Assembly (NCBI RefSeq): GCF_000150275.1
Contig: NW_002060945.1
Location: forward strand, 1,244,199 to 1,308,198
Reading direction: 5' to 3'
From: Trichoplax adhaerens
Lineage: Eukaryota > Animalia > Placozoa
DNA length: 64,000 nucleotides
Shown here piece after piece: positions 22,901 to 46,392 of this stretch (positions are counted from its first letter, which is position 1; every line of letters begins with the position of its first letter). Both the position numbers and the translations under genes were made by a program. The notes beneath the pieces are model-generated. The model did no database searches, was not told the origin of the DNA, and saw only the letters and a program-made list of their open reading frames with translations.

Positions 22901-24789
22901 TGACATTGTCATTCTTATTAAAAATTGATGGCATACAGTTGTTGATGATGAAAAGGTTTAAATAGTAACTTTCCATGAAAATTAGCTCTTAAATTGATCG
23001 ATTTCCATTTATTTATGCTAGCTAATATGATATAAAAATCTTTACTGTATTAAAAATGGATACCGAAACATATTAATCGATACTCTTATTTTATCTATAT
23101 CTTGCTTTTACCCGCTATTATAAGGTTAATCGTAGGAGTGCGATAGGAAGTAAGAGATAAAACATTTCAAAATCTAAATGTTGCAGGCATAGATCAGTAA
23201 AATATCTTTATCGCCTCTCTTTCAATTGATTTATAGGTATTAATCGACAATATTGATTGATATTTTATGATATTGGCCTTTCCGTGTTTACAGATTAGAG
23301 CTTCACTGGAGAAATACTAGCAAGGAAAAAGGTAAGCTAACGTTCATAAACAACGCATCCGCTTCTTTTACACAAGATGTTTTAGTAAGTATATTGCCTA
23401 CTGTAATAATGGAAAGAGAGATCAAAAACTTGCCACTATAATCAGTTTCCAAGCTACGGTATTCTTTAATATGCTCTATACGTATTATTATTTTGATGAT
23501 ATTATACGAAGATAAATGATTATGATCGCGATGATACTGACAGTATTTAGAAAATAGATATCAATCTTTTGACAAAGCACACTAGAATCAGCTTTATGCT
23601 ATAAAAATTTATATTAATAGTAAATCACTAACAAGCTTGGAGCAACAACTATCAAAGACTTTACACGAAATACAGGTACTTTGATAGAACAGCACTTGAT
23701 TTTGGGGCGATTTTAACGGTATCAATAATAACCCAATTGCTGCCATAAAATTGATTCAAGTGTGCTTCTTTGAGGGGAGGAATAGCCTTACTTTCTATGC
23801 TAGTAATTGCTAATTTAGCAATATCCATGGAATGAATAATGATAAAACAGAGCATTTGAGAGTAAAAACAGAATGATAGACCAAGGTATTTCCCTTCTTG
23901 CAATGATCATGGTTTCAGATTATATTCGCCATATACTACGTCTCCGAGTATACAGAAAATATTTGCAATTTTTTATTTCATTTCAGTTACTAATCTTAAC
24001 ATGACGTAGTCAGAAATTAACTACTGATTCCATGAATCAGATTTCACTTTCATGCATAAATATGATTCATTTTATGTTCTTTAACAGTCATCAATTTTAT
24101 GAATTATGAAATCACGGTTACACCTAGGAGATTGTCGAGCGAGGCAGAATATTCATATCAGTGATAAGAGATTCTAGAAGTACAGAATTCATCAACTTGA
24201 GTCAAGTAGCAAGTCAGAATTATGAACGAATTTTACCATCAGTTATAGGGGTTTGCGTTTAGGCTGGAACTAAATATATAAATTAGCTTAACGTTTACAT
24301 TGGATATTTATATTGATACCGGTAGAGAGGGATTCTAGATGCAATAAAGTCATGTACTTACACCTAGTTGAAGGTTTATGTTAGTATTAGGTAGATAAAT
24401 AGATAGATATTAAGAGGACTCTATTAACACTACAATCATTGCTTATAATATAGTAAGTAATCGGAAACATAGGCAAAGTGCTATCTACCTACAAGATTCA
24501 AGCGGCTAGTCTGTTCAGATTTTATCAGAAGCACACATTTATGTTTTTCAGAGTCATATAAATAGTTAGGAGAAGCTAAATAATTTCATAGATTTCTAGC
24601 CAACGGTACTTATGGATACTACTAAATTTCACGACATTGATGCTTCCTAAGATATACTTATATGATTAGAGTTTTAGAAAGGATGACTCTACTATATCGG
24701 TTGTTTCATGTAAATAAAAGTAAGTATTCACTCTATATAGTTTCGTATGCAAAAGGCAATCTGTATAAATTCTTAGCAATTACGTATAT

Positions 24790-25495
24790 TAATACTAAGA
24801 ACCCAAGCGAAGAAAGGATAAGTAGATGATACTGTTGATAGACTAATTCCTCATAATATTACTAGGTGAATGTTTTTCTATTATTTTACCTTTAGTAATA
24901 CTAAGAATTCATGCAATGGAAAGATACATAGATGATATCGTTGATAGTTTAACTGTTTATACTATAAAGAAAAGCATGATCGAATTTGATTCAACTCATG
25001 ATATTATACACTATAAACGATGCTTGTGATTTCTTTAGCAACGGTGTGGATAGCAAAATCAAAATACCAGATAGTAGCCAATGATTTATATATCACTTTG
25101 CTTAAATAAGAAATCGTTATGAGGCGGGCTAATTTTATTTTTTAAAATTCATGCTTATATTAGATAGTGCTGATAGATTAATTGCTTACAATCTTACAGC
25201 AGTAAAAATTTTTTAGTATTTTACACTTAGTAAGACTAAGAATTCATGCGATAAAATGATACACAGAAGATATTGTAGATAGACTATCCGTTTTACACCG
25301 TAATATAATGAAAAAGCTTGATTACGTTTGATTCAACTCATATTATAGATGGACGATGCTTCTGATTTTTTCAGTAACAGTATCGATAGCAAAATAAAGA
25401 TACTACATAGTAGCCAATAATTTATACATCATTTTGTTTTATTTACAAATCGATATGAGATTTGGCTGATTTTTATGACTAAAATTTATGCCGCT
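24790..25495. repeat. ~335-bp tandem duplication
   Basis: tagtaa.actaagaattcatgc...tttgattcaactcat...gatagcaaaat...tagtagccaat at ~24893 and ~25228. Confidence 0.8.
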
Positions 25496-27549
25496 AGATT
25501 GCTGATCATGGTAAATATTATGATTATGCAATCTTACGGTATGTTTACTAATCATAACATTCTTCTCTAGTGGTAATCTTAAATTCAGTTGACCTCTTCT
25601 GTCATGGTTTAGTTAGAGCTGGATGACAATAAGGTGTAAAATAATTGGCTGAGCAATGTAAGTTATAGATGTGTTTACTTTTGCAGCACTTTCAATAGTA
25701 GCAACGTTAAAGCCAATTATCCTCTTTCGTTACGCTCCAATGAATACTAAACATGCAGAGAAAGGATGGCAATTAATATCTTGAAGCGCAAGCTATAACA
25801 GTTAACACAGTTTAAATATACACCTTACGCTATTCCTTACCGATATAATCTTAAAGACAATTATCCTTTGCTAAGATGTTTTGATACAATCTCAATCGTT
25901 AAGAATTGTGAGAAGAATTTAATTGTTCTTGTGGTTTCATTTATAGACAAAAACAAGCGGATTAACTACCCCAGTTACTGCTCCATTTCATTTTTTAATT
26001 ATAATTTTCGTAATTATATTAGTTGGAAATAGATTCTGCGTTTACTTACCTTTAAATCTTATTTTTTGTTTATATCCTGGAAGATTTCATTACCGGGTGT
26101 CTAAATCTAACTTATTTACCCTTTCAGATATTCGTATATCATACCGCTATAGTAAATTTTATTACAGCGATTAATATTTTCGACGTTATCCTTTTTAAAG
26201 CTGTTAATCAGAAGTCCTATGAGATATTTAGCGTTCAAGAGAGGGTAGTAAATTGGTCAGAATTTAAAATATAAATACGTGTCTATCTTGAGAATATATG
26301 CTGGTTAGTGGATATGGTAAAAATTATTGGGAGGCTTGGCGAACTCCGAAGTGATTAAGAACTCAAAAAAAATTATATACCCCTTTACTTCTAATTTCTC
26401 TCAGCTCTTCCCTAATAGCTGATGTACTCAAAATTCGATGTAGAATATTAAAACAAACTCAGCATTGCCATTATTCACGAGTTCGAGTGCTTCTATGATT
26501 GGCTGCAAATAAGCTCAACGCTTCTCTGTCCATAATTTAAATTGATTGCTGGCTTAGTATGAATTTTAAAGACTGATCAAGGCTATTCAAAACATCCTTC
26601 TTCTTGCAGATAAAGTAAAAGTTCTAAAATTTATCAATTATTAGCAATTAGCTCATTGTTAAGCGTGCTTTTTCCGAAATCTTGCAATGATTATGATGGC
26701 TATTTTGTATTCAGAAATGTCTATTGTCCTGCACATTTCTGTACCGATTAACTATCTGCAAAGCTAACTGCATTGCATAAATAAAACTTCTGCCGGATGT
26801 ACTACACTCAATAAGTATTTTCTATCGCTATCCATTCATAACATATGAGTGCAGAGCAATTTATGCCTTACAATATTCTTTGATCAAGTCAATTCTGTGT
26901 GAGCTTGTACTATAGAGAAATACTCGGGTGTAAATCGTTCTCAATTCATGGTCTTTGCTATACTATTTGTTCATACGGGTAGTATGGATAGATTGGCCAT
27001 CAAAGTATAAATTCATCCATTCGCCAAGACCACTGGAGTATGACATTTTTACAAAATGATCTTAGATAGATTTGAAAACGTTTGAAATTGGCATTCTGTT
27101 TTTATTGCGTCAAGTTAAAATTCATTTTAAGTCAACACTATTGTGAATTCTTCATCGAATAACGAATAGGGAAGGTAATTTTACTCTAAATTAAGATTTT
27201 TTGTTATATTTTATCAGAACCACCTTGAGTTTTCCTTTAGTTATGCATGTCCTGAGTGTAGTTTACAATACGGACTCTTCTTTCGTTTTATACTTTATAA
27301 AGCTTTCCATGTTGGCCATTCCTTCCATTATCATTGTAATTAATATCATTTTATTGTGATATTTACCTGTTTACTAAAGTAATTACTGAAACGGGATTAT
27401 GCAGCAGTACCGTATTAATAAATATCTCAGAAGTGGTCATAAGGGTCGATTGACTCATGTTTTCATCAAGACTTTTAAGTATTTTATTAATCCTGACTCT
27501 ACTTTATCGCTCTTAAAAAGAATTTATAGAGATTATTAGTATAGAGTAT

Positions 27550-28035
27550 TGCAAATATTTTTATTTCTGATAATAATTGGTAATGACTATACAATTTTTA
27601 CATTAAATTAATGATTTTGGCCATATTTTACTGCAATTTATAAACCACTATATTATATAGAATCTGATTTTCGTACAAATATTTTTATTTTCAATAACAA
27701 TTGGTAATGATAATTTTACTTGACGGCAATAGTTTTTACCATGTTTTACTTAAACTTATAGCTTACTTATCTTACCGAGCCCGATTTTTCGTATCAATAT
27801 TTTTGTTACCGTTAGCTGATAATGATAATTTTTACCGCTATTAAATTAATCATTTTCGTCACACTTTAAAAGGACTTACATATCACTACTTTATATTGAC
27901 TCCGATTTGCATAAATATATTTTTATTTGAGTTAATAATTGGTAATGATAATTTTTACTCTAAATGAAAGATTTTTAGCACATTTTACGGCTGGACTTAT
28001 AGACCATAACATTATATTGAGTCCAAATTTCCGTA
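27550..28035. repeat. ~120-bp tandem repeat, 4 copies, just upstream of the LGR ATG
   Basis: atatttttattt...ttggtaatgataatttt...(t)ccgattt at ~27553, 27678, 27796 and 27916. Confidence 0.8.
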
Positions 28036-28262
28036 GTTGTTTAATGTACTTAGCGAATTCCGTAACATTTGCCCCATGACAGTTTAGTCATCAAATTGAT
28101 ATACAATAAGTAACTATGTTTGACATTAACAGCACATAGAAAAACAAGCTAGATGTATGATCCACTATCGGAAAGTTTCAAGTCACCTATCATTAAAGCC
28201 TTTTGTTCTAAATTCTATACAATTATCGCTTTCTGATAAATTAGATGAAGCTAGCGTGTAAA

Positions 28263-28606
28263 ATGAAATGGATCTCTTTGGTAGCTTTATGGATTTGGAC
28301 TACGATAACTCCAGGTAGCGTAATCTACCATTATTTATGCAAAACTCTTGAATATTTTTACGTTAAAAATACAAAATCATCTAATATATTGCTATAATAA
28401 TTATAACGCTTAACTCCTACACAAGAATGAACACTGAAATAATCTCATTAGCATGAAAAAATTAGCTTACGTATTCTTTCTTAATTAGGTAATGCGGAAA
28501 ATTGTCCCCAATACTGTTTGTGCTTGCAAGGTCTTATTTCATGTCAAGATGCTCGAACAAGCACGGTTCCAGTCAGCAATGTGACACGTCCAGATGTATT
28601 AGTTCT
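28263..28606 (+). CDS. LGR exons 1-2: signal peptide and LRRNT cysteine cap
   Basis: ATG at 28263, hydrophobic stretch, phase-1 donor G|gtagcg matching acceptor ttag|GT at 28489; CPxxCxC...C motif. Confidence 0.8.
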
Positions 28607-31600
28607 GTAAGTGATTCAAAAAGGCTTTTCTTAGGTATTTTCTAGCTTCAATAGATCATAAAGGTCCTTTTCTAGTATCATTTAATATAGACTAGATTTG
28701 ATTTTTGTAAAAGCTTTAGTTATCCTGTCTCTGATTAATTTTTCGATGACAAACCAAGTTGATAATTCTGAAACACGGCTGAGTTGTACAGTATACGAAT
28801 ATTCCGACATTAATATTCGCATTGTATTTAATACTCTCGCTTAATACCTCCCCTTCTTTGTACTTCTACATTCTTCAAGATATTTGCTACTTTTATATGT
28901 GGCATATACAAATAATAATTAATTGCTGATATAGCTATTTAGATAGTATATAGATACTTCAGTTGGATAGCTATTCCTTCCGTGGCTTTAAAATTTTACA
29001 ATTTCTATTAGTTGATCCCGCTTAGAAGCGTATCCATAACATTTTTACAATTATACAACAATTTAATAATTTTTTGCCTCTACAATATCTCCTAGATTCT
29101 ATAATGGAACTTCTGTTAGATCAATCAAAGCACAAAATTTTATGAACTACCCTAATTTGTTAAACATGTAAGTACCATAAAAAATGAAATACTATCTACT
29201 GGCCAACTTTTATCATCTTTTGCTATTTTGAGAGGAAGGATTTGATATCGTATGTATACTCGTATTTTTATAAGGAATCAGCTCACCTTTTTTTCCTATA
29301 TTTATAAAGACATTTATCTGCAAATTTTTATTTTTTGGATATCTCAGTTAACTACTACCCCAATTTAGGTATAGTATACGCATATACATTGCGCAGATCA
29401 GTTAGTTATGTAACTTTATCATTTAATGGAGATACTGGTCGGTTATACAACTAATACCAATTTATGCATAGTATAGCTTACCGTATTTTGAACGAAAGGT
29501 TAGCTATCTCAATTAGAAGCCTGATTACCGAATTACAGTTGCATAGTAAACAGGGATTAGCAAGATTTAGAAATCCTTGATGGTAAAGTAGATTACATTT
29601 TCCTATAGAGTATCTTAGTTCATTAGGCGGTGCCATTTTTTGTATATATATAATTATTTTGTAGCTATACGTATCAAGTACAACTAGCTTCCTTTAATCC
29701 TTAATTCGAGTTTAATATTGAAGTCAATTTATTTCCTATCACACCATAGCTAGCTACCTTATTCAGTTACAAAAGTTCTATATAATTTTTTTATAATTAT
29801 TGTATAGAAGGTCAGCAATCGGTAGTCATTTTATTCTCTAATTGCAATTGCATCCGGAGTAATTTGCGATTTGTATCTCAGTAAATTGTACAGGTTCATG
29901 TATAGCTAATAAACTATAACAAATATATATGCTGGTGTAATTATTTCAAATCAATCAAATCCTTGAAAAATAAATTTTTATTTTGCTTTCTTAAGAGGCT
30001 ATACTCAATCGAGCTAAACACTCGCTGCAAATATCCACTTAGAGTGGATATCAATATTTTTTTAAAATAAGCCGAAGAGAGTAAATCATTAAAGGCATTA
30101 AAGATATGAAAGCTATAGTAGAATGGAATAATATTATTTAGTCCTTGTTCGTAATACTGTAGATCATTCTCATTATTACTAGAATTTTTGCCCATAATGC
30201 CATCGAGGTCATTGAGCCAAATGCTTTCTGTGGATTAAACGGACTTCGGAATTTGTACGTATGATCATGAGTTAAATTAAAAAATAACCAATTTTCTAAG
30301 ACAAGCTATCATACTGCTACGGTATTAGTCTCAGTAAATTAATGAATAGTCGGCGAGAAGCGCTCTTATTTTGCGACTTCATCTGATCTTTTACTATCTT
30401 GTATGATTGCTATCGTGGTGAAGACGATTAAATTCCAATGGCTTGAAGCGGATTAACAATGACACTTTTGCATGTTTACCTTATTTAAAGATCCTGTAAG
30501 TTGGAGAATATAACATTAAAGCAGTGTAGTTTTAATTATTATTAGCTTATAATATTGCTACTTCTACCGTACCCGATGTAAATCGCTTGGTTGCAACATT
30601 TGAATAGCCAATAAAGTTTATTTCAATCTTGATAGCCTTAAAATTAGCTTATGATCCGATATTGCGACTGATTTATGGCTCATTGGAATATAAATCTATT
30701 TTTTCTCCTATAGCAATATGGATTATAACGATATCGATGCGATCGAATCGCGAGCACTGTGTGGACTGAAAAATCTAGAGACCTTGTAAGGCGTTCTTAG
30801 AAACTTGTTGCCAATGTAAAACTTTTCCATTCCAAAAAAGCATTCAGATAGCTTGATTTAGACACAGAGAACTCCTGATACATAATTTATTGCATCCTGA
30901 TTTATCTAAAGAATGAATTGATTGAAATGCTTGTTAATTGATTGGTCCTTCTTTATGGATTTACGTAGGCATTTAACTAGCAATAATCTGAAATCCATAC
31001 CGCAAGATACGTTTTCTTGCCTAACGACATTAAAATTTCTGTAAGTGTTTGTAAATAAATATTTGTACGGTAATACTATGTATGTCTGATAGTGACTATG
31101 TAGATTATAAGACTGGTTAAAGTCAAATATCTATTCTTTAACTAGAATCAATCAATTAAAATAAAACTTATTAAACGCATTCCATGCACATATATATAAA
31201 TTTTATTACTATTGTTTTCAAGATTAGAACTACTGTACATTTCATAAACGATTTGTTTCTGGCAACCAGCAAGATTATGCCAGCTACATTTTATGATTCA
31301 TAAAATGAGTAATATTAATGGTTTTGGGTTATGCAGAGCTATGCTTGATAGTCAGTGATTTTAAATAATACGTACAATGTAGTTAGCAACTCTGATCGAA
31401 ATTATCTAACCAGTGTTATAATTTTAATTTCGTAAACTCGTAAATAAAAATTTCCATCGATTTTACCTCCTAAAGAACGTCAATCGTATTACATACATCG
31501 ATAGAATTTTATTTAAGGAATCGAATCGTCACCTAAGTCTGACAAGCATTAATACAATTCAATTGTTTGCAGATATTTAGATTATAATGGCGTAGGAGTA

Positions 31601-34600
31601 ATTGATCCGAAGATGTTTTGTGGACTGAATTATCTAAAGACATTGTGAGTACAATTAACGTTTCTTCTGTTGTATCGCTCCTATTTATCGGAGAATTAGG
31701 AAAATGAATTAATTTTAAACTGATGAGATAAATGACATTTCTAACTCAGTGATGATGATATAGCTAACCCATTTTATCCATGATGGATTACGTTTTCGTA
31801 CCTTTGAATAGATCTCTTACTGGTAATCAAATTAAAAAAGTATCGAACGAAACTCTGGCATATTTAGATTCATTGACAACTCTGTAAGTTAAAATAGGAC
31901 CACGAGAATATAGTGACACTAGTGGAAAAAAGTTACTATAGTCGTGTAGATATGCTTCGTAGATCCGATATCTGATGATTCACAACGACAGAATAAGAGA
32001 TAGTCTTAATGAAATTATAATTACATTCTAAGCTGAACTAATATAAATCTGCCTAAAGTTCTGAAAATACTTTATATTTTATGACATTTCCTGGGATTTT
32101 AACTATATTTGTACTTCTCTTTTAAACCGTTTAGGAATTTAGGCTTTAACGATATTGATACATTAGATAATAATCCATTTTGTGGCATAATGGGCTTGCA
32201 ATTTCTGTAAGTTGCATTATAAAATTTTTGTATGATCAAAAAGAAATACTATGTGCAATTAAGAAATTAATTCATATCAACGTTAATTCAATTTTAAACA
32301 TTTTCTAATTATAATTAATTTCTTCAAATTCTAATAGTCAACTAACCAGTAACAAGATAAAAATTTTACGCAATAGAAGTTTGACATGCCTTCAGTCATT
32401 GCTGTTTTTGTAAGTTGTAATTTGCTATTTGGAAATTTATATTTTTATCCTTTGATTTTATACAAATTCAGTAGTAAATATCCATATTAGTCATTAATAT
32501 GGCTTATTTACACGTACATGCTACCATAGCTATGATTGCCAGTCTTATTATCTGAATGGGGAAAACAAGCTCAATCAAGCTTTTAACTAATAAAATAGTA
32601 AATCTTGTATAACTATTTTAGACATATTAATTAATTTTGTTTATTAATGTTTTGATCATTAAAATAAGATGTAGCAATACTTTTACATGCTAGAGTAAAT
32701 ATTTTACGCAATTATAGAAATATTATGATAGCTAGTTCCAAATTATGGCCCATTTTTACTGTTGATGCTGAATAGAGCAGTTATAACATATTTTCTTTTT
32801 CCTTTTTTTAAACTTGGATCTGAACGAAAGATCTCTTGATCATAATTCGATCGATACTGTTGAAGAAGATACATTTTCAGGATTGCGACAATTAATCAAA
32901 TTGTAAGTTTACTGACGAATTATTCTACTATTGGATATCAGTTCTTTTGCTAGCTTAGAATTAGTAACAGCGTATCTTGCTGCTATTCTTATTTATACGA
33001 TTCAATAACATTATGACTATTTTTAAAATAAAACAGCAACTAATTGAATTTATACTGTACAGATAGCCATATAACATTAGTATTTAATACGGCAATTTCT
33101 TATATTATGACTGATAATAATAATTATAGTAAATATGATGAGTTCTCTACACTGCTGTTAGTTTATTTAGTTATAACTCACAGCATTAGCTAGCTTTACC
33201 TACATCAAACCAGTATGAAAGGTTTTTATGTTAAATTACAAATTATCTGCTCAAACTACACCTAACTTTTACTTGAATTTGCGTTATTTGAAGAGATTTA
33301 TCAGCGAATCTTTTAAGGAGGGTACCGTCAAGCTTTTTTAGAGATCTCACATCATTGATATATTTGTAAGTATAATAACTACATAACTAAATTCAGTAAA
33401 ACTAAATATAGCAATTTACGTAGTATCATAAAATAGATCCAGAGCCGTGATGACGGTTAAGATTTAAATATAAAGTTCATGACTATTTGTGTTTTAATCA
33501 TGGACTTTGTATCCTTATTGTAGGGATCTCGATTATAATCTTATCGAAAGCATTGAGCCAAAATCCTTTTGTGGAATCAATCGGTTGCAAACTTTGTGAG
33601 TTAATACGATCATTTATAAGAACCTTCAAATTCCAGTACATGATTTCAAACAATAACTGATTAATATTGAGGTAATAAATGCATTAATTTGCTTTTTCCC
33701 AATAATCGCAATGATTAGGCTCTTAAATGGCAATAAAATCAAAGAAATAAAGTTGGAATCTAGTTTGGCCTGTCTATCTTCGCTACNNNNNNNNNNNNNN
33801 NNNNNNNNNNNNNNNNNNNNNNNNNNNNNNNNNNNNAGCCATGAATGCAGTAATACTAAAATTATCTTGTAAATGCTAGCCGATCATTCGCTGATTCTAG
33901 TTTTGTCACACGGCATCAATCAGTTCTTTGTTGTTCATGTACCCTTTCCATGATTGAGTTCATTTCTTACCTTTACTACTACGTAATATCACTATGTTAA
34001 ACAGTACACAGCGAATATATATACAAATACTAGTATTAGCTGTGTCGATGGATTGTTAAAATTTACCTTTTAGCTACAGATACTGATGGGCAAAATTACT
34101 CAATCAATGATTTATTTGTGATTGGTTCTATTTACATCGGGTTGCTTTTTCTATTCCTATAGAAATCTTCAGCACAATTTTATAAGCAGAATAGATTCTC
34201 GGTCTTTTTGTCATTTAGATAAACTAGCTCATCTGTAAGTCTTGATTTATTATTGTCTTATTAACTGTTAATACCAATTATTTGGGGGATCATTAATAGC
34301 AGTCATATCCTTAATCAACTCAGAAAACAATTGTTACAAATATGTAGATAGCATCGACTGATAATTTTTTCATATTTGTATTTGTAAGGTTCCTGCAGAA
34401 TAATTTTTTAAGCAAAATAGATTCTGGAGATTTTGATTGCCTTCCGCAATTAAAGACATTGTATGTAGCTTGCAATCAATCTATAAGATGATTTAGCTGA
34501 TTCAATTATTAACTTTATCAGCGCTGTAAATTTTATATTGCTTTACTAATATTCTGGCTTACGCATTTAATAATTAGGCGTTTATCATTTAACTCGATAA

Positions 34601-37600
34601 ATACAATAGCTGCTAATTCATTTTGCGGAGCCCAAATGATACAAGAACTGTAAGCAAAAGCCAATTTTATTATTTCATGTTCTATCATACTTAATATGAC
34701 GGTGTGCTTGATTCTGGGATCCAAGTAGTTGCAGACTAGTCAACCCCTAAATTAGCCTTTCATGTATCTTCTTAACTGTCCTCGCTAGATTACTGGAAGG
34801 AAATGAATTAAAAGAACTACACAATGATAGTTTTGCCTGTCTTTCATCTTTGACGAACTTGTAAGTTTCTAAAATCAATTAGATGGTTAGCCATAGATTT
34901 CTTTAGTTGAAGTAGAAAGCTGTGGTAGTCAACAGAAATTTTGATGATAACATCTGTGTTAATTAATGAGCGAATACACATCTTTTAGTACAAAATATCC
35001 GACATATAGCGCTTTCATTTAAAATATATGCAGAACGAACTATTAATTTCTCTAGCTGGGTGTAGATGATGAATATAATCGACATATTTCAAGCAATATA
35101 GATTACCTAAATTTAAGGCAAATAATAGCTCATAAACTTACAAATTAGAGACATTGACTTCGCCAAGTTGGAAACAATCCATCCAAGGACATTCTGCCCA
35201 TTATCAAGTATCGTAGATTTGTAAGTCATTAATCGATTTCTATCTACCCTAAATGATGATCATAACATTTTAATATCAGTACGGGATACAATTGGCCTAC
35301 TATAATATTCAAATGATACATATTAGGCACTTGGAAGGTAACCGTTTAACAGAACTTTGGTATGATAGCCTCGCATGCCTAGGATCCATTACAGGATTGT
35401 AAGTAGTTGTATAAACACGTTCGCTATCTATCAACAGCTTGTATTTTAACTGCCGTCACTTGCTAGATCGCTGAACGGAAATAATATTCAAGAGCTGCCA
35501 CCGAGGAGTTTTGAAACGTTAATATCCTTGAAAACGCTGTAAGACAGAAATTTTCGTAATATTTCGCTATATCCTGCCATGAATCGCTAACACTCCAGAT
35601 CTATGTCGATTAACATTATTAACGTAAAATATTTATAAGGAACTGTAATATCGTTTCCACAGTAATTTTAGTCCACAGAGGAATCCAGTACTATAAAAGC
35701 TTTTTATTACAAGGTTCTAAAGAATAGTACAGCAATAATTAATTACTCACAAGAATCTAGTCTAAAGTAATCTGAGCTCAATTAGATATCAAATCTTTTC
35801 TCCTCCTTTACGCTCAGATTTGTACACCTTATATACTTTTCTCTGAATCTATTTAAGGCAATAACATCGTCTACAATCAGACATGAATCATCACTACATT
35901 TTACAGTATTAATCAAACTGCTTACAATATTATTACTTTACCATTAATGTCCAACACCGTAAGGTATTGGGCATCTTTACAATCTTAGTATTTCAAGTCG
36001 TATAACGTCCTGTACCATAATTAGTTAACAGCTATATTAGTGAATAACACTTTCTAATATAGTAGTTACCAGTCACCTAAATCTAGCAGCACAAGAATAT
36101 CTATTTTTAGAAACTTAACTATTCTAAATATAGTACACAACACAATCAAATATAGCTATCGCTACAAGCAAATATAGGGTGCATCACTACAGGAACTAAC
36201 TATTCTGAGCGTACCCAACTATTAAATTTTCGTATTGGAGTTTTCATCATAACCATCTCCTTCGTCTTCATGCCGTATTTAATAACGTAATTGTAGCCAT
36301 TAGCGCGTTGTAAAATATTTGCTTACTCTGACATGCCATAAAATATACCAATATATTTGATATAGCTACATATCAAAAAGTTATAGAAATTTCTTAGTTA
36401 GAACAAAATACTTATAATAGATTGAGAGCTAGCGAAACAGATCTAAAATTAAAGCTGCGATAAACTACTAATTTTTGGCTGATATTTTTAAATAGGGAAA
36501 TCAGTAACTGCGAACTGACTGTCATAAATGAATATCAATTTATTGGTCTTATTAGTTTGGAGAAACTGTAATTGGATTAAACGTTTATAATATATATATA
36601 TATTATATTTAGATTCTCGGCGCTTTACCCAGACTATAATAAAATGTTAGTGATGCCTTAATAACGTGACTTAATAATCATTTATTCAAATAAATACTAG
36701 GGTATTAAGGTCTAATAATATCCATACCATTTTGAAGACAGCATTTGACGGACTGGATACATTGCAACGTTTGTAAGTTGGTTTGGATATTAAATCTTGT
36801 GCAGCGTTTAATAACATTATAGTAAATAAATACTTTCGAAATACATTTCATTTTGATGTTATAACTTCATTCTGTAGGAAATGGATTCTAAAAATATTCT
36901 TTGGATCATTTAACAGTATACTTTTATTGCAATTAGAGACTTGACTGACAACGCATTATTTGCCTTAAACTCGACAACATTTCAAAATTTAACTGCGTTG
37001 CAGGAACTGTAAGTTACCAAATACCAATTACTACTCGTGTGCTGTAATTTTAACCCAAAGAGTTAAGCAGCCATTGTATAAGCATCTTTACCCGTACAGA
37101 AATACTATAGCATAATTGAATATAATAAATTTAAACCCATTACAAATAAATATTACTTACAGAAAACCACTCAATGAGTAGATTTAATATTGAAATAGAC
37201 GAGTCTTGGTTTACGATACCGGATAATTACTATAATAAAACTTGAAGTAATCATTGTAACTTTGCTATAAAATTTACTCTCTTTGATAAGTTTTAGCTAA
37301 TTGAAAATATAACTGCTATGATTCGCGATTAGATATTTAGATGAGAATACCATTAAGAACTTGGAAGCGAAACAATTTGAAAACCTATGTAATTTACGAT
37401 TTTTGTAAGTTTACTCTAAAGCATTTAGGATTTACGATATATTTGATACTAGATATGGTATCGTAAGTGCGGTATATTCGTTTAGTAACTATGTTCTAGT
37501 TTAATATTTGATGGAATTTGCTTAGTTCTGCGATGTCTATGAAAAATTCGAATAGATATCGCAAGAGTAGGTGTTTCATTTGTCAGCTATACACTTGATA

Positions 37601-40600
37601 TCAGAAATACAATTGCGAAGATTAAATACTCAATCTTCTCTAATATACTATAGGATATATGTCAACAAAGAATTTGAAATTTTATAAAAATACAAACGTT
37701 ATTTTCTAAATTTCGATAATGTTTGTGTAGTGTTTAGGACTAGCTACATAGCTAAGAGTAAACAGTTGTGCGTAGCTGTCCATGACAGATGTTGCAAAGA
37801 AATTCCTTTAACGCAATATAATAATAGATGTTAAATTCCATGCGTATAAATAAAATTTATTTGAAGATGAATCTCATCGTTTGCTGCATATTAAACTTTA
37901 ATAAAATTACTAAGTCTATGGTAATTATTCAATATTAGATCGTTAAAAACTAATGGAATCGTAAGTGTGCATCCTGAAGCATTCTTTGGATTGCATAATC
38001 TCAAGAGATTGTAAGCATCGAATGATTATTATTATCTCTAGATTTAACGTTGAATCCTACATTACCATGTTGGATATTATTACTTACCAATTAATAAAAA
38101 TTACATCTGTAAATATCGTCTATAATTAAAATCTGTATTTGTTTCAGCCTTTACTTCTGTGATATTTTTTAGACAGCTCGATGGCAATCGTATCATCAAT
38201 ATAAAGGATTTAAAGTTACCGGATGCTTTGACATTGGATATTTTGTAAGCAAAATTAATTAGGAATTTAGTCTACAAAACACTAAAATTAATTCGATAAA
38301 GTAGGTAAGGTTATAAATTTGACTGATATTTGAAAGTAAATTTAGCGTTAATGTCAGCGAATTTATATATTGCTCATCTTTGTTATGAATAGTAACAGAA
38401 TATATCGTTGCTTTTAATTGTGGATATAGAAGCTTATCCAAATCTAACTTGCAAAATCTTGCAAAATTTGAAACTCTACTGAGCAATGTAACGGTGAAAA
38501 TAATGTAAGCACCATCGAATTCACACGCATTTTATAATTCCTAATATAACTAGCAAGATAATGTCGACGAACTATATTATAATATATCAAAATATCAATT
38601 ATATCTCTTCATTTTCAAGGCACACTGCTCCATGCTCGGTTTAATCTTAATCTAGTATAAGTTAATCTTTTTTTTCTCTATCTTGTCACTTATTTCAGGG
38701 ATTTATCCGATAATTTATTTCATGAAAATACTAATTTTCACTTCTATGATTATCAATCCTTGTAAGTTTGTAAATATCTAGTTGATAGCTATATATTTCA
38801 CGTATTTTAATCAGCAAAAATGGCCCATTTAATAGATTAGAACCGTTGTTACTCAATCTTACTAAAAATTATCTACCTGCAAGTAAAATTTTGTTCTTGT
38901 ACTTTTATCGTGCATATAAGAGAAAGTGTGGAGAGCTAGCGCCATCTTATAAGAATTAATTGTAGTTTAAAGTTAAACGCTTAGTATAAGAGCAATTTTT
39001 TTTACAATTTTTTCTCTAGAAATTTATCCTATAATTTCTTACAAGAAGATTTTCCCCTGAATTTCTCTAATATTCCATCGCTACGTCATTTGTGAGTAAA
39101 TTCTAGCGAATCGAAAATAAAATAGCTAGAAAATTCAAACTTTGGAGTAGGATGTGCTTAAAGTTAAAATATAATATTTATGTACAGTAAAATGCAATCT
39201 TGACCTCCAATCATTCTGGGTATTATTTTCATGCAATTTATGGAAGAGTTAATCATTGTTAGTATAGTGTTAGTCTGTTAGTAATCATACTCAGATTCAG
39301 TCTTGGATTTTTGCAATAGCATGTGCATGAGGTATATGTTATCCGTTAGAGTCAATTTTTTAAAGACACCGCCATGCACAACTTGCAACATTTTCATGAA
39401 GGTATTTACCACTTAAAGCCAACATTTTCGTTGTATTATCTTTTATTTACAGAGATTTAACTGGAAATCGATATCGACACATTAATGAACGTTTCATGGC
39501 CGTATGGAAAGGATCAATAATGCTATCAATGTAGGCTTAGGAAGGGTGTAATCTATTTTGGTTAAATGAATATGATATTCTTTATAGCAATCCAATTTAA
39601 TGATATTCAATTGAAAAAGTAGTGGATCTAATTTAAAAGACCACAATATCATTCCTTGACTACTTCAATTTTAATTTAAGTAACATTTCATCGAATTCAT
39701 TGGAATCGATTGAAGCTGATACATTTAAGTCTTTGACTGAGCTCAATTCGTTGTATGTATCCTTCTTTGCGTTACATTTTTCTTATTGAATTTATATCGA
39801 AAAGTATTGATAAATACAAACGGATATTGCCTAATAGATATTTGCGAAACAATTATTTGACCAAAATGACCTTTATACGACCTTTATCTAAACTCAGTAT
39901 CCTGTAAGTACTTATTCTCATTATCAATTTGGAATCACAGTTTTATTAACATATAAACTACTTCAAAATGTAGTCAAATATATATTTAGACAGACAAATG
40001 GCGGTATTAATGTACCGATACTGCAGAATATTATATAACTTTGAATCAGATATTTAATACTGTGCTTATTCGATGATTAAATTATACCTATTAGCATTCA
40101 TAAGTTGGAATAATTAGAAGTTATTAAACTTCAGAGAGGATTAACTGATGGTATAATTATTAAGATAACATTATATTTAAATTATTTATAGATCGCTGGG
40201 TAGAAATAATTTTAAAACATTGGATAAAGAGGATTTCATGAACTTAACTGATTTGCGAGAACTGTAAGCTACAGCAATCGCTAAACCTGTTTCTAATTTC
40301 CTTAGTTTAAAGTTATCAGCTATATTCTATAGATTTGTGTTTGATGTCGCTCGAATGCTTCTATTAAATTTCTGACTTACTTTAGTTACTTGGATAACAA
40401 CCGAATTGGATACCTACGTGGAAACTATTTTGAAAATATCCAGCTAACTACTCTGTAACAGAAAATTTTCTTATGATAATAATCATGTAGCTAGGTCACG
40501 ATTTAAATTGAGGAAATTAATTTTAAATCGTGCTATGGGGATACTAGGTCTCTGGAAAATAATATGATATCGTCAGTTGTTGATGTTTTTACCAATTCCT

Positions 40601-43600
40601 CATCGCTAAAGACTTTGTAAGCTTCACATAACTTATACTAATTCTACTGGGTATTTTCAATACATCTATAGACAAGTGTAGAAATTTATAATTTCATGCA
40701 TATATATTAGATAAGTGTAGATGAAAGAATCCATCATTTATTCCTTCTTCATTATGCTATTATAATGAAACGGATCTTAGATTTATTTCTATTCATTACT
40801 ATACTTTGGCTAAATCGTGGTTTTAACAACTACTTCAATAATACTAATTGTTTATCAAATAAGGAACTTAAATAGCAACCTGATAGAGAATATTGACAAT
40901 ATCTTCCATGAATCAATGGCACAAGTGAATGCTATGTAAGCATCCAAGAATTTATTGCATTGATAGATCAAGATGAAGTACTCTAACTAATTTCGACATG
41001 ATATAGTTATCTACGCGATAACAGGATCAAGGCATGGAGTGGTGGTCCGTTTCGTCACTCTCCTATTCTGGCTATACTGTAAGTTTGTCTTGCCTTCCAG
41101 CTACGGAATATCACTCTTAATAATTGATTCACTGGAATAAGAGCTATTTAATTCTTTTGATTAATTTCCTACTTGGCACTGTCTAAAAACATCTGAATCT
41201 TTATAGAGATCTTAGCGAAAATCTGTTGACGGAAGTTAGCGATCTGGGACTTGCTTCTATGAGTCAATTGTAAGTATATATATACATATACTTATCAGTT
41301 ATATGATATTAAAATTATAGTATCAAACTTAGACTATGCTATTAAAAATAAGCAACGATTTCAATAAGAATACTATGATAATCTATCAAATTTTGATGTT
41401 CTTGCAGTAATATAATTAATGAGATAGCGCTCGGTATCATTTTCGGTTCTATATTTTATTCATAAATATTCTACTTACAATTGAAGAAATTTTCTCTCCT
41501 ACAAATTTTAGAGATCTGCAAGGTAATGAAATTAATTACTTATCCTGCCGTGGATTACCAACTGCCTTAAAATCGCTGTAAGCAATATCAAGAATTAGTT
41601 ACTAATTTCAATTTGAGACTAAATCAAGACTGATAACATTACTATATGATATAATATTCGGATTTAATGAAGTTATTGGACATTTTAAATTTTTATATCA
41701 GTAATTTGGCCTACAACAACATTAAGAAAATTGACTCTGATTGCGACACCTTATTCCAACAAATAAATGAATTGTATGATTTTCAGTTTTAGAATTGTTT
41801 TATTTCAATGATGCCAATACTTGCCTAATTTTGAAGTTTATTTTGAATTTGTAGCGACATTAGTTTTAATAACTTAGTTTCCAACGGCATGAATATTAAA
41901 GAATCGGTACTTGATAAACTGAAGCAAATCCTAGTCTTGTACGTACAGCATGTTTAATTTATTATCCTCATGCTATTGTAGTCAATCACTTGGCAATATT
42001 TTCCAATATGGATATAGACTTGACCTAGTAAATTTTAAATTCTTGCTATCGGTTTGTTATTTTTGAATCAGTTTAATTACTATAGTTGGATTGAGAAAGA
42101 TTTAGGGAAAGTAACAACTAGATAGTAACTTACTCTTGATAAATTTTTAGATCAGAAGATTAATTAAATTGACTTAAAGTAGTTGAAAGTTCAATAAACG
42201 TCATGAATATATTCTGAATAATGTAATATTCACTTTTTGTATAGCTAAATAATACTAATTTATATTCATTAAGGGTGATCTTCTTCTAATATGTTTACCT
42301 TATCTTAATGAAATATGTTCATGGGCTTATTCCTAACTAAAGAAATATCGCTGGCAATAATATTACGCGTATACGGCATAAAACAACCTTCAATCAATAT
42401 CGGCGATTGTAAGTTCATCATCGGAATTTTATAATGTCATTTCAAACTACGGTAACAAGTATTATATTTAAACTATGATAGTTTAAGTCACTTATTTCCT
42501 TACACAGTAGATATAACTCTCATTTCCAATAAATACATCGAAAAGTTTCTATATTCTAGCCAAGAATAAACTTAAAATACGCATATACAGTTGAAGAGTA
42601 TAAAAGCAGTTTGATGCAAAGGGCTAGTCCAAAAATTTTAATGGTTGCGCATCCTACTGCAGCATTCCCTCCTTACTTAGCCAACTGCGACTTTTTGTAA
42701 AGCATAAAGTTGGATGATGTATTTTCGATATACTGACATTAAGCTGAGAAGATATATGCTTTGTAATAGCACAGTTTAAAGTAGCTCTTTCTTTTAACTA
42801 AGGATAACTTTTTAATATCTTGAGCGTAATACTTTTGATATACTGAAATTAACCTCGAAAATTTAGGATTTACACCAGAATTCTGTAGGTATTAAGCTTC
42901 TTTTCCTAATCAACTATGGTCTTTATAATACTATAATTAGAAACATTAGCTATAATCCGATGACACTGACAGAACTATCTGAATTTATGGGAAGAGGAAC
43001 AAGCTATCTTATGATGATGTAAGCCATTTCCATGCGTTAATACGAATGAATTTTTGTTGCTTTCATGTCGTATAGAATCTAAACCTACGGTATTTATTTT
43101 CTTGCAGTTAGATTATAATAGCAACTACTACTCTATTTTAGCCACTAAATGATTTAAATTTAGTTCAATGAGTCAATTTTCAGTTCTTTGTATCTTCAAC
43201 AAGATCCTTCCATTTACAGCTTTTGTGGCAAAATTTGCATCAAAGATCGACTATAAACGTTAAATACGATAAAATATAAAGCGAAATTTACTATTATGTA
43301 ATTTGCTTTTACTGTATTATTAATTTAATATTTTGAGTGTCATACTGCAGTAGTGATAGACTCGAAATGCTGCAGTAAAATTTTTACTTTACAATCAGGT
43401 AATAAATAGAAACGTAATCCGATAGAACTGTAAATTGGGCAATATGTAAAATGCTAATTTGAGAAAATTTAAACACAATCTATCAGAATATTTAATCCCT
43501 TCAAGACTAACTGCTTTAATAGAAAATGGATATATTCAGTTACTCGTTAAATTTCACTTTGAAGCTTGACATTATCTTCATTGATTAATGATTTTTGGTA

Positions 43601-46392
43601 AATTGAATTTCAGCTGATTAAGAGCGTTCATTTTGCTATTTCAGTGACATCAGCAGTTTAAAATTCGAACAGTTACCTGATGAATATTGGCGATTCTATC
43701 AAATTCTTAGAATCTTGTAAGGCATAGCACTCATAGAAGATTTTTTAGTTAAAATATTTGCGAAAGGATTTCGTATGTCGACATAGGATAAATAAAATCA
43801 CGTCATTCGCTTAGTATAATTTTACTCCTGGTCATTACGGAATTACAATTTACTTACCAGAATTAACTCTCGTCCACTTGATTTCCGCTTAATTTAGGCA
43901 CATTAAGGATAATGGTTTGAAGGAACTTAACTATGCTAATAGGACTAGATACGATAATAATGTGGTTTTAGAATTGTAAGTTATTCAGTTGATTCTATTA
44001 TTTGCGTTGTATCGATTCCTGAATAGACAGTAATGATCTGGGATAGATATTACCTAGCTTATAGATGAATCTAAGCCTGGAATTTTAATATGGCCAATAA
44101 GAACAGTATAATTATCACCGAGCTAATTAGTTTATTTTAGCTATAGAAAGATAATAAAGATCAGTATACATCTAGAAATCAACGAGGGTTGATCCTTCAC
44201 GCAGAGATCTTAATGGCTGCAGTTGTACCAGTATTCTTTTTCGATATGATCGATTATATGAAGATGCTTAATATCGACTGTTAAGATATGGATATATCAA
44301 CAAAATTATCGATGATTAAATTGTATACTGCATTTCATGGTCTTATTGATGAATTTAAACTATTCTTATCATTATTAATTGAAGAGACGTTTCAGGCAAC
44401 AAAATGAACAATTTCTTTTCCAGTATTGAAGCTCGATTAGTGTCCTTGGAAAAATTGTAAGCTCTAGTTCAAAGATTTTCTTTATACTTTTTCCGATTTA
44501 GGCTTTCCGTGAATAAAGAATATATATTCTATCTATTAGTGACTCAGTAGTAATTTAGAATTTTATGTCTAAATTCTCTATTTTAAATACTATCTGAGAT
44601 TTTAAATATGAATTACTCTCGATGGTTTAGAAATGTGGCAAGAAATGGAATTTCTGACATTTGTTATCGCAGCTTAGCAATCCAGTTTCCAGTTATTCAA
44701 ATTCTGTAAGTTGGTTTTGTGTTAATTGTAATTAAGATCTTTTTCGTTCCTTTCACTCTCAGTCTAGTTATTAATAATAATGATAGAATAATGATAAGAA
44801 TGCGTACACGCAATATTATAGCGATGCCAGGATGAATAAAATTGATCGTTTGCAAAGGAGATGCTTCAAAGGAATGGGAAAATTGCGAGTATTGTAAGTT
44901 AATTTATTGATCAGCAATGGAAACGCTAAATTTCTAACTCAAACTAGGAATATCTTACAAATTGATCTAGTTGTGTATCCTCATATGCCCTTACAGTTTA
45001 GGAAAGTATATTGAATATCACGAGAATACAAATTTATGCACACAGTTTTCAATTAAACTGTAACTTACAGTTAGTACTTGTAGTTGCCTTATAACATAGA
45101 CTTTTCGATTTTAAATTAATTTGAATGGTAATGTAAATTGGTCATGTATATCAGTATTATCACACTTACTAGCTATGACAGTTAGTTATTTCATTTTTAA
45201 TATAAATGACAGTATTTATTTAAATAATTAGACTTTTGCAAGGCAATAACTTGGCATATGTTAGCGGAAAATCATTCTATGGTCCGCCTGAAATGGTCAC
45301 AGTGTTAGTAACTACAGAAGTAAATGTAATAATGATTAAATTAGCAAGCACTAATCCTTTTTATGTTAATGTTGATATATTAGATTGACAAAGCGTGATT
45401 ATCTTTGTTGTATGGTTCCCGCAAAAATTAAACTTTGTCAACCGAGTATGGGTTCTGACGATTTATCATCATGTGAAAATTTGTTGTCTCATTTTTCACA
45501 AAAATTATTTATTTGGATTGTGGGTATCTTAGCTGTTGTTGGTAACCTACTCGTGTTTATTCAAAATCATTCCATTCGCAAACAGAAAAATAGCTTGGTT
45601 CCAATTTTTCTTATCAATAGTCTAGCTCTATCGGATCTCCTAATGGCGTTTTATTTGATAATTATTATTGTAGCTGATTTAGCTTTTAGCACTGGAGAGT
45701 ATGGTCTGAATTCAGAAATATGGCTATCCAGTCCGTTTTGTTTAATAGCATGCTTTCTAGTTAACGCGTCTAGTTTAACAACTGTACTTTTGATGGTTAC
45801 TATTTGCTCAGATCGCTATATTTGCTTGGTTTATCCTTTATCACCGAAAAGAATGAGTATTAAGACAGCACGCATAGTTGTCGTGTTCGTATGGATCTTA
45901 TCGCTTTCATTTGCAGCAGCTCCGGTAATATCAAGTGCTAACATGCCAGGGTACCTTCGATTGTATACTTATAACAGCATGTGTATGGCTAATAATTACC
46001 AGATTGACTACTATCGAGTTTGGATGATTTCTTATTTGTCCATAATATTTATTGCATGGGTAGCTATGACAATCTTATATATGCGTTTATTTATGACTAT
46101 TCGTCGTAGCGGCAAGAATTTAAGAAGATCGACCGCAACTGACAATACAGTTATAGCGATACGCCTAGCATTAATTTTAATTTCTGATTTAATCAGTTGG
46201 GTTCCATTCTACTATGTTAATTTGCATGGGTTGTTAACTTCTGGGCGTGTAGACGTAATAGCACTTCAATTTGTTGGTATATTTTCTTTGCCCATCAATT
46301 CAGCTATTAATCCATATTTGTATACATTTACAAATATTGATATTATTAAGAAGTTTTTAGTTCGCCAGAAAACATTTAGCACTAAATCTTGA
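28263..46392 (+). CDS. Giant leucine-rich-repeat-containing GPCR (LGR; type-C-like hinge, no LDLa), ~52 coding exons, ~1,550 aa
   Basis: Exon 1 28263-28314 MKWISLVALWIWTTITP(G) is signal-peptide-like. Exon 2 28489-28606 NAENCPQYCLCLQGLISCQD is an LRRNT cap. Then 49 AG/GT-bounded phase-2 exons of 63-87 nt between 29096 and ~45303, nearly all one xLxxNxIxxI...FxxLxxLxxL repeat (e.g. 30183-30254 IFAHNAIEVIEPNAFCGLNGLRNL, 36937 DLTDNALFALNSTTFQNLTALQEL). The last splices in phase into the hinge+7TM exon 45384-46392. Confidence 0.9.
33787..33836. other. Assembly gap (50 N) truncating an LRR exon
   Basis: The N run begins inside the exon starting at 33719 (LLNGNKIKEIKLESSLACLSSL...). Confidence 0.99.
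45384..46392 (+). CDS. Terminal exon of the LGR: hinge plus class A 7TM domain
   Basis: 335-codon ORF preceded by a tag acceptor at 45381-45383. Hinge YLCC..C.P...DDLSSCENLL; TM1 GN; TM2 LALSD; TM3 SDRY; TM4 W; TM6 SDLISWVP; TM7 NSAINPYLY; short C-tail. Confidence 0.95.

Follow-up and report, generated by a model that had tools for sequence, protein, structure and literature searches.

The window analysed here, 64,000 nucleotides (nt) of the Trichoplax adhaerens genome (contig C1412, positions 1244199-1308198; AT-rich, with a GC content of ~0.30, in a genome of 105.6 Mb), carries on its plus (+) strand a gene for a G protein-coupled receptor with leucine-rich repeats (LGR). In all likelihood this is one intact and expressed gene, encoding ~1572 residues and belonging to a placozoan-specific expansion of LGRs. 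The predicted domain order of its product is signal peptide, LRRNT cap, 49 leucine-rich repeats (LRRs), a hinge of ~45 residues with four cysteines, a rhodopsin-type seven-transmembrane (7TM) domain, and a short cytoplasmic tail. It is an LGR in having a rhodopsin-family 7TM, an LRR ectodomain behind a signal peptide and Cys-rich cap, and a Cys-rich hinge joined to transmembrane helix (TM) 1; it is a member of the expansion in having many LRRs, no LDLa module, and a hinge and 7TM in common with the other members.

The coding sequence from ATG 28245 comprises 4716 nt, or 1572 codons, almost all of it in short exons. The window's only open reading frame (ORF) of at least 110 amino acids (aa) is 45385-46392 (+), the 7TM exon, as the first-pass annotation of this DNA had noted, and examination of the remaining ORFs turned up nothing of note. 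Upstream of the 7TM exon, exons were sought as AG...GT intervals open in the frame that is fixed by the first exons. Between 29096 and 45303 (+) this yields 49 LRR exons, each bounded by AG and GT, in phase 2-2 and a multiple of three in length (72 nt in 36 cases, 78 and 66 nt in three each, 75, 69 and 63 nt in two each, and 84 nt in one), with one LRR per exon throughout the array. Reading of the DNA, the exon scan and Pfam agree with the first-pass annotation in placing the signal peptide, LRRNT, 49 one-repeat exons, hinge and 7TM in this region. The LRR count is accordingly put at 49, with a plausible range of ~44-50.

The evidence for the LRR exons comes in three tiers: exons 1-15 are covered by spliced RNA, exons 39-49 have conserved counterparts on an orthologous contig (L013, below), and exons 16-38 are predicted on the basis of splice sites, phase and LRR motif, with weaker splice sites or motifs in five of them (those starting at 36496, 38433, 38699, 39453 and 40386). 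Comparison with transcript and DNA contigs covered 28240-34239; the RNA contigs come from an RNA-seq run (X6) and from a second run of another study (X7). The gene is made up as follows.

23289-23331, +: exon of the 5' untranslated region (5'UTR), of which at least 43 nt are visible, joined to 28245 by splicing; in-frame TAG at 23296-23298; end of an X7 RNA contig, with AG|GTAAGC next
28245-28314, +: first coding exon, signal peptide, ATG 28245 and in-frame ATG 28263, ends in phase 1; RNA junctions into 28245 and 28314->28489
28489-28606, +: LRRNT exon, Cys-rich cap, 118 nt, ends in phase 2; RNA junctions 28314->28489 and 28606->29096 in X6 and X7
29096-29167, +: LRR exon 1, 72 nt; RNA junctions
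30183-30254, +: LRR exon 2, 72 nt; RNA junctions
30424-30495, +: LRR exon 3, 72 nt; RNA junctions
30714-30785, +: LRR exon 4, 72 nt; RNA junctions
30969-31040, +: LRR exon 5, 72 nt; RNA junctions
31573-31644, +: LRR exon 6, 72 nt; RNA junctions
31812-31883, +: LRR exon 7, 72 nt; RNA junctions
32135-32206, +: LRR exon 8, 72 nt; RNA junctions
32338-32409, +: LRR exon 9, 72 nt; RNA junctions
32831-32902, +: LRR exon 10, 72 nt; RNA junctions
33294-33365, +: LRR exon 11, 72 nt; RNA junctions
33524-33595, +: LRR exon 12, 72 nt; RNA junctions
33719-33786, +: LRR exon 13, 68 nt read plus 7 nt at its end within the N gap, 75 nt in all; X6 and X7 contigs
33787-33836, no strand: assembly gap holding the end of exon 13, its donor and intron sequence; bridged by an X1 DNA contig
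34163-34234, +: LRR exon 14, 72 nt; RNA junctions
34389-34460, +: LRR exon 15, 72 nt; X6 and X7 contig ends after exon 14 match 34391 onward
34578-34649, +: LRR exon 16, 72 nt; predicted (AG/GTAAGC, phase 2-2, LRR motif)
34789-34860, +: LRR exon 17, 72 nt; predicted
35149-35220, +: LRR exon 18, 72 nt, lacking the Asn; predicted
35327-35398, +: LRR exon 19, 72 nt; predicted
35467-35538, +: LRR exon 20, 72 nt; predicted
36496-36567, +: LRR exon 21, 72 nt, weaker donor GTAATT; predicted
36701-36772, +: LRR exon 22, 72 nt; predicted
36937-37008, +: LRR exon 23, 72 nt; predicted
37333-37404, +: LRR exon 24, 72 nt; predicted
37939-38010, +: LRR exon 25, 72 nt; predicted
38173-38244, +: LRR exon 26, 72 nt; predicted
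38433-38504, +: LRR exon 27, 72 nt, degenerate motif, alternative acceptor at 38430; predicted, weaker
38699-38761, +: LRR exon 28, 63 nt; predicted, weaker
39020-39091, +: LRR exon 29, 72 nt; predicted
39453-39530, +: LRR exon 30, 78 nt, donor GTAGGC; predicted, weaker
39681-39752, +: LRR exon 31, 72 nt; predicted
39838-39903, +: LRR exon 32, 66 nt; predicted, colinear with paralog exons
40192-40263, +: LRR exon 33, 72 nt; predicted, matched best by the exons at the equivalent position in four paralogs
40386-40454, +: LRR exon 34, 69 nt, donor GTAACA; predicted, colinear with paralog exons
40548-40616, +: LRR exon 35, 69 nt; predicted, colinear with paralog exons
40864-40935, +: LRR exon 36, 72 nt; predicted
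41007-41078, +: LRR exon 37, 72 nt; predicted
41207-41269, +: LRR exon 38, 63 nt; predicted
41512-41577, +: LRR exon 39, 66 nt; same length in the ortholog, 12/21 aa identical
41702-41773, +: LRR exon 40, 72 nt; ortholog-conserved, 17/23
41855-41938, +: LRR exon 41, 84 nt; ortholog-conserved, 21/27
42343-42408, +: LRR exon 42, 66 nt; ortholog-conserved, 18/21
42941-43018, +: LRR exon 43, 78 nt; ortholog-conserved, 20/25; partly used by TRIADDRAFT_54151
43645-43716, +: LRR exon 44, 72 nt, lacking the Asn; ortholog-conserved, 14/23; absent from the public model
43898-43975, +: LRR exon 45, 78 nt; ortholog-conserved, 14/25; in the public model
44385-44456, +: LRR exon 46, 72 nt; ortholog-conserved, 12/23; in the public model
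44631-44705, +: LRR exon 47, 75 nt; ortholog-conserved, 16/24; absent from the public model
44822-44893, +: LRR exon 48, 72 nt; ortholog-conserved, 19/23; absent from the public model
45232-45303, +: LRR exon 49, 72 nt, donor GTTAGT; ortholog-conserved, 14/23; in the public model
45384-46392, +: last exon, hinge, rhodopsin-type 7TM (DRY, NPxxY), short tail, stop at 46390-46392; Pfam 7tm_1, RXFP1 match, ortholog

The cysteines of the LRRNT exon follow the pattern C..C.C......C. Nine further candidate exons were dropped for a poor LRR motif or donor: 35689-35766, 35907-35987, 36241-36309, 38815-38898, 39130-39186, 41353-41406, 42607-42696, 43464-43538 and 44997-45069 (the one at 42607 is also without a counterpart in the orthologous contig). 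A tblastn search of the window with six paralog proteins added no reliable exons.

Expression and splicing of the 5' part of the gene are directly documented. In the contigs of X6 and X7, GT..AG joints lie at the predicted borders of all exons between the signal peptide and LRR exon 14, and the contig ends match exon 15 at 34389; together the two runs document all junctions of the stretch that starts with the 5'UTR exon and closes with LRR exon 15. Since the X6 contig is 1992 nt long and only 964 nt of it precede 34236, it must continue through ~14 further exons. The same contigs dispose of the N gap as a place where the gene might be split: X6 and X7 link 33786 to 34163 with 7 extra letters, which makes exon 13 75 nt long and keeps the frame. 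An X1 DNA contig (record 7) spans the gap, with 89 letters between 33786 and 33841 in place of 54 assembly positions. The gap is small and conceals no exon. (Over 28240-34239, ~1-5% of positions differ between the X1 DNA contigs and the window; the differences fall in introns and also at certain exon sites. These contigs probably come from another strain or haplotype under the same organism label. Runs labelled organism B match the exons of this segment at 99% or above.)

The transcripts also fix the 5' end. Preceding the acceptor at 28243-28244, an X7 contig has 41 letters that map uniquely to 23300-23329, beside a GTAAGC donor. This 5'UTR exon has, in the frame of ATG 28245, a TAG at 23296-23298 and no later ATG, so that translation starts at 28245 or 28263 and no coding exon, for LDLa or anything else, precedes the signal peptide. 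(The start proposed at 28263 is thus a real in-frame ATG, although the RNA junction places another, 28245, at the true beginning of the exon.) A six-frame search of the whole genome for LDLa (PF00057) gave 116 matches, none of them on contig C1412. An LDLa module, which the first-pass annotation had found missing, is excluded for this gene. The first intron (23332-28244) is 4.9 kb long, as compared with 68-1015 nt for the introns within the LRR array.

At the other end, support comes from a 7.1-kb metagenome contig of another placozoan lineage (L013; ENA ERZ27263980, contig k141_326868), which carries the orthologous gene. Its 7TM exon is 76% identical to that of the window in nucleotides and 80% in amino acids (non-synonymous divergence, dN, 0.11), with the stop codon in the same place. 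Upstream of it, each of the last 11 LRR exons has a counterpart of identical length (66, 72, 84, 66, 78, 72, 78, 72, 75, 72 and 72 nt), and their order is kept; the introns between them differ in length from those of the window. For these 11 exons amino acid identity is 69%, dN is 0.21, synonymous divergence (dS) is saturated, and dN/dS is ~0.09. The LRR exons are under strong purifying selection between placozoan lineages, which argues for a conserved partner; the ratio gives no pointer to evolution of the arms-race kind.

The public record holds only a fraction of this gene. TRIADDRAFT_54151 (P0157) is a model of 429 aa spanning 42960-46392 and 100% identical to the 7TM exon. It uses five exons, takes an internal Met within LRR exon 43 as its start, and omits exons 44, 47 and 48 (43645, 44631 and 44822), all of which are conserved in the ortholog. 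About 73% of the predicted protein is missing from the public record, and a protein search with the 7TM exon returned only TRIADDRAFT_54151 and an ORF of 80% identity. Replacing this badly truncated model by the corrected one enables expression cloning, deorphanisation and structural work.

The last exon matches Pfam 7tm_1 (PF00001) with an E-value of 1.2e-23 and 84 bits (cut-off 30.5 bits). Its translation retains N1.50 in TM1, LALSD with D2.50 in TM2, DRY, the cysteines of TM3 and extracellular loop 2 (ECL2), W.P in TM6, and NPYLY. Both this gene and its ortholog end ~20 residues after NPxxY at a conserved stop; a kinase-like tail is absent. The hinge motif is CC...C.P....D.LSSCENLL. In a search of solved structures RXFP1 (7tmw) comes out on top (6.9e-34, 120.9 bits), followed by TSHR (1.2e-22, 83.9 bits) and then FSHR and LHCGR, while no LGR4-6 chain is matched by the last exon at E<=1e-10. 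The alignment with RXFP1 takes in the hinge segment that adjoins TM1 (C..C.P..D.SS.ENLL); TSHR aligns there as well, so that LGRs share this final stretch of the hinge.

Characterised LGRs have ~7-10 LRRs (types A and C) or 16-18 (type B). The receptors of type C (RXFP1/RXFP2, also called LGR7/8, and GRL101) resemble the present gene in the 7TM, in the TM1-adjoining hinge segment and in the shortness of the hinge, but they have LDLa and ~9-10 LRRs where this gene has no LDLa and 49 LRRs, and its hinge is distinguished by one more CC pair and by the Cys of SSCENLL. Type B (LGR4-6 and Drosophila LGR2, the bursicon receptor) has the longest characterised LGR ectodomains, of which this one is ~3 times the length; its hinge is long, in contrast to the ~45 residues found here, and the gene does not qualify as type B. 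An exhaustive protein search found non-placozoan relatives at 30-36% identity, and LDLa occurs together with a short LRR domain in all 12 that were sampled. Where these relatives are very large, the extra length consists of CUB, F5/8C, kringle and lectin modules rather than of LRRs. By similarity, then, the membrane half appears type-C-like, with RXFP1 as its best match. That part of the first-pass reading stands. For the hinge the picture is mixed: it is short and aligns best with RXFP1, but the CC pair and SSC differ, and the published survey of placozoan LGRs calls this hinge a type of its own (PMC9545775). The gene is not filed under type C, for LDLa and a complement of 7-10 LRRs are both wanting.

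Placement within Trichoplax is clearer. In T. adhaerens 46 LGRs have been described: 41 that are specific to placozoans, together with two type-A and three type-C receptors (Hauser, Koch & Grimmelikhuijzen 2022, PMC9545775). The 41 have unusually many LRRs (34 in Tadh-LGR15) and a hinge of their own type, and are separated from type C in the tree of Fig. 6; Supplementary Table 2 lists the family by CoGe identifiers (TriadITZ), without sequences (PMC9545775). These placozoan-specific LGRs, Tadh-LGR6 to LGR46, are like the present gene in species, in their many LRRs, in their own Cys-rich hinge, in lacking LDLa and in forming a large lineage-specific expansion (PMC9545775). Tadh-LGR15 is drawn with 34 LRRs, as compared with 49 here. 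The gene therefore belongs to a receptor family already published in 2022 and is not a new kind of receptor (PMC9545775); an earlier description of the architecture is among the findings that the first-pass annotation had listed as refuting its reading.

The family is large. Searching the genome with the hinge+7TM exon gives 120 matches, many in tandem clusters; more than 50 reach E<1e-55, with 35-57% identity. More than 60 hinge+7TM exons of the placozoan-specific expansion are present. Ten family proteins have a hinge consensus in common, with an invariant Y..CC..P..V..C.P. The public family proteins are fragments or partial models, for example RDD37320.1 (1062 aa) and RDD37287.1 (1270 aa, partial), both called 'GRL101-like' and both of Trichoplax sp. 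H2. A protein search with the paralog P0002, limited to proteins of 584-1858 aa, returned only other paralogs; given this length window and a word filter, neither this result nor that of the 7TM-exon search speaks against an annotated full-length protein of this locus or of its Trichoplax sp. H2 orthologue.

Long LRR arrays are general among them. Twenty paralogs were surveyed over 10 kb each with a stringent LRR-exon detector that recovers 39 of the 49 exons of the window (totals of LRR exons are estimates). In 11 minus-strand paralogs the 9 kb upstream of the 7TM are full of LRR exons to the edge, with 13-28 detected in each; in nine plus-strand paralogs the region 10-20 kb upstream still contains 10-25. 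LRR exons lie on the gene strand only at 19 of the 20 loci, with a single opposite-strand match at the other (L024). All 20 sampled paralogs, then, have long LRR exon arrays, which is what the paralog survey proposed with the first-pass annotation asked about. Moreover, exons of the four closest paralogs have as their best partners window exons 32-35, 38-41 and 47-49, in order, which makes the long array older than these duplications. What stands out in this gene is the stretching of the LGR scaffold: 49 repeats, ~3 times the length of LGR4-6, set on a relaxin-receptor-like 7TM without LDLa. In Trichoplax this is the family norm, with an exon-for-exon structure that is ancestral.

The array itself retains some trace of how it may have grown. 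LRR exons 2-20 (30183-35538) have a two-exon periodicity: mean identity is ~7.5 of 23 at lags 2, 4 and 6, as against ~5.5 at odd lags, and exons of a '..DYN.I..IE...FCGL' type alternate with exons of a '..L.SN.LK.I....F.CL' type, and the position of the Cys is particular to each of the two. This fits growth of the N-terminal array through duplication of two-exon units. The two-exon period is not seen in exons 21-49.

Some idea of the shape of such an ectodomain is provided by an AlphaFold2 (AF2) model of the 1062-aa paralog P0002, which has ~28 LRRs (mean predicted local distance difference test score, pLDDT, 72.6; ~28 regularly spaced beta-strands). In Foldseek the model matches LGR4 over its whole length, full-length LGR4 structures being its top matches, and its ectodomain matches the near-closed rings of the Toll-like receptors (TLRs) TLR8 and TLR13, with TM-scores of 0.5-0.58 by target. 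With ~28 repeats already superposing on rings, 49 would need close to two turns. This lends indirect, model-based support to the proposal that the solenoid exceeds a single turn; the 49 repeats would then form a spiral, or separate into sub-domains where the C-terminal third has its irregular repeats. (TLR8 and TLR13, whose ring-shaped ectodomains have 26 LRRs, are comparable in their long solenoid of typical 24-residue LRRs; they differ in having a single-pass TM and a TIR domain in place of a 7TM, the array is ~2 times longer here, and there is no sequence relationship beyond the repeat.)

RXFP1 needs its LDLa module for activation, and lacking LDLa, the present receptor cannot follow the RXFP1 scheme. 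A protein-sized ligand might instead bind the concave face of the more-than-one-turn solenoid. The signal would travel through the disulfide-knotted hinge, in which D.LSSCENLL aligns with the TM1-adjoining segment of RXFP1 and TSHR, and the 7TM, with its N1.50, D2.50, DRY, TM3-ECL2 cysteines and NPxxY, would then couple to a G protein. By analogy with the glycoprotein-hormone receptors, the most economical guess is that activation would consist of a ligand-induced movement of the ectodomain that acts on the TM1-adjoining hinge segment. Receptors of this class may shed light on how proteins or surfaces are sensed by early animals that have no neurons.

The nature of the ligand is where the most durable alternative lies. 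The same gene might encode a receptor for surface patterns or for cell-cell recognition, a GPCR-coupled counterpart of the Toll-like receptors rather than a hormone receptor. The very long solenoid, the superposition of the modelled paralog ectodomain on TLR8 and TLR13, and the large, tandemly clustered family would suit such a role, as would the lack of canonical TLRs in placozoans and the existence of other placozoan GPCRs with lectin domains (PMC6321704). On the other hand, the LRR exons are under strong purifying selection (at the dN/dS given above), the exon-for-exon colinearity of paralogs points to a conserved scaffold, likeness to TLRs in the LRR fold is generic, and no data on binding or expression pattern were found. 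Family size and the lack of TLRs (PMC6321704) leave room for a recognition role, but as an account of this gene it is unlikely. A bolder form of the same idea would have the giant placozoan LGRs generally serve not as hormone receptors but in GPCR-coupled recognition of surfaces, large or repetitive, of microbes, algal food, other cells or matrix, filling the niche of the absent canonical TLRs and being activated without LDLa, via a hinge-borne tethered segment, when the two-turn LRR spiral is loaded; this must be considered quite improbable.

The reading of the locus as a single expressed LGR gene of the placozoan-specific expansion also has several points to contend with. LRR exons 16-38 (34578-41269) are predicted exons. 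Every LRR exon is symmetric, so that any one could be skipped with the frame intact. The public model uses only five exons. The survey of paralog arrays is incomplete, and in some paralogs the more distant LRR exons could be parts of other genes. Finally, the affinity to type C is one of similarity, and the published tree puts the placozoan-specific LGRs outside the type-C clade (PMC9545775).

The first and third of these points would be accommodated if the locus held two genes, the LRR exons having been wrongly chained: an upstream LRR-only protein, secreted or anchored, and a short LGR like the 429-aa model, which starts at an internal Met of exon 43. Transcript coverage of 28240-34239 does leave exons 16-38 without direct support. 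However, exons 29096-45303 contain no break of phase 2 and no stop, and there is no second signal peptide, LRRNT or terminal exon; the X6 contig runs ~14 exons past 34236, the exons at 43645, 44631 and 44822, which the public model omits, are conserved in the ortholog, and arrays are continuous in paralogs too. A pair of genes is accordingly highly improbable.

Nor is it at all probable that the one-repeat exons are cassettes that alternative splicing mixes into many isoforms. All 49 are in phase 2-2 and multiples of three, and any subset would be in frame, but LRR exons of LGR genes are ordinarily symmetric in phase. The transcripts assembled from the two runs, which belong to two studies, contain LRR exons 1-15 without omission and in the order of the genome, and no skipping joint was reported; assembled contigs drop rare variants, so that minor isoforms may still occur.

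The notion that the gene is an RXFP/GRL101 orthologue, a genuine LGR of type C with overlooked LDLa exons, has RXFP1 as best solved match, LDLa in all of the nearest non-placozoan relatives and the NCBI name 'GRL101-like' of the Trichoplax sp. H2 paralogs to commend it, and can be given next to no credence against the in-frame stop in a transcribed 5'UTR exon, the absence of any PF00057 match from the whole contig, 49 LRRs instead of 7-10, the separate counting of three type-C LGRs from the 41 specific ones (PMC9545775), and the three LGR 7TM exons that do adjoin LDLa clusters in this genome (C1407:2284041, C1410:6918957 and C1402:733095), which are 32-35% identical to the window exon, as against 35-57% for paralogs of the expansion.

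Two minor observations concern relatives of the gene. A single LDLa match (33 bits) at C1414:4905068-4905154 (-) lies ~17 kb upstream, on the same strand, of a paralog 7TM (C1414:4887418-4888368); it could belong to a neighbouring gene, or mark a member of the expansion that does carry LDLa. Two non-placozoan LDLa-LRR GPCRs, P0055 (1367 aa) and P0060 (1348 aa), show weak similarity to protein kinase domains on the C-terminal side of the 7TM: the matches, to Pkinase at 5.2e-05 and to PK_Tyr_Ser-Thr at 2.1e-05, lie near or under the cut-off. Fusions of LGRs with kinase tails may therefore not be confined to Placozoa.

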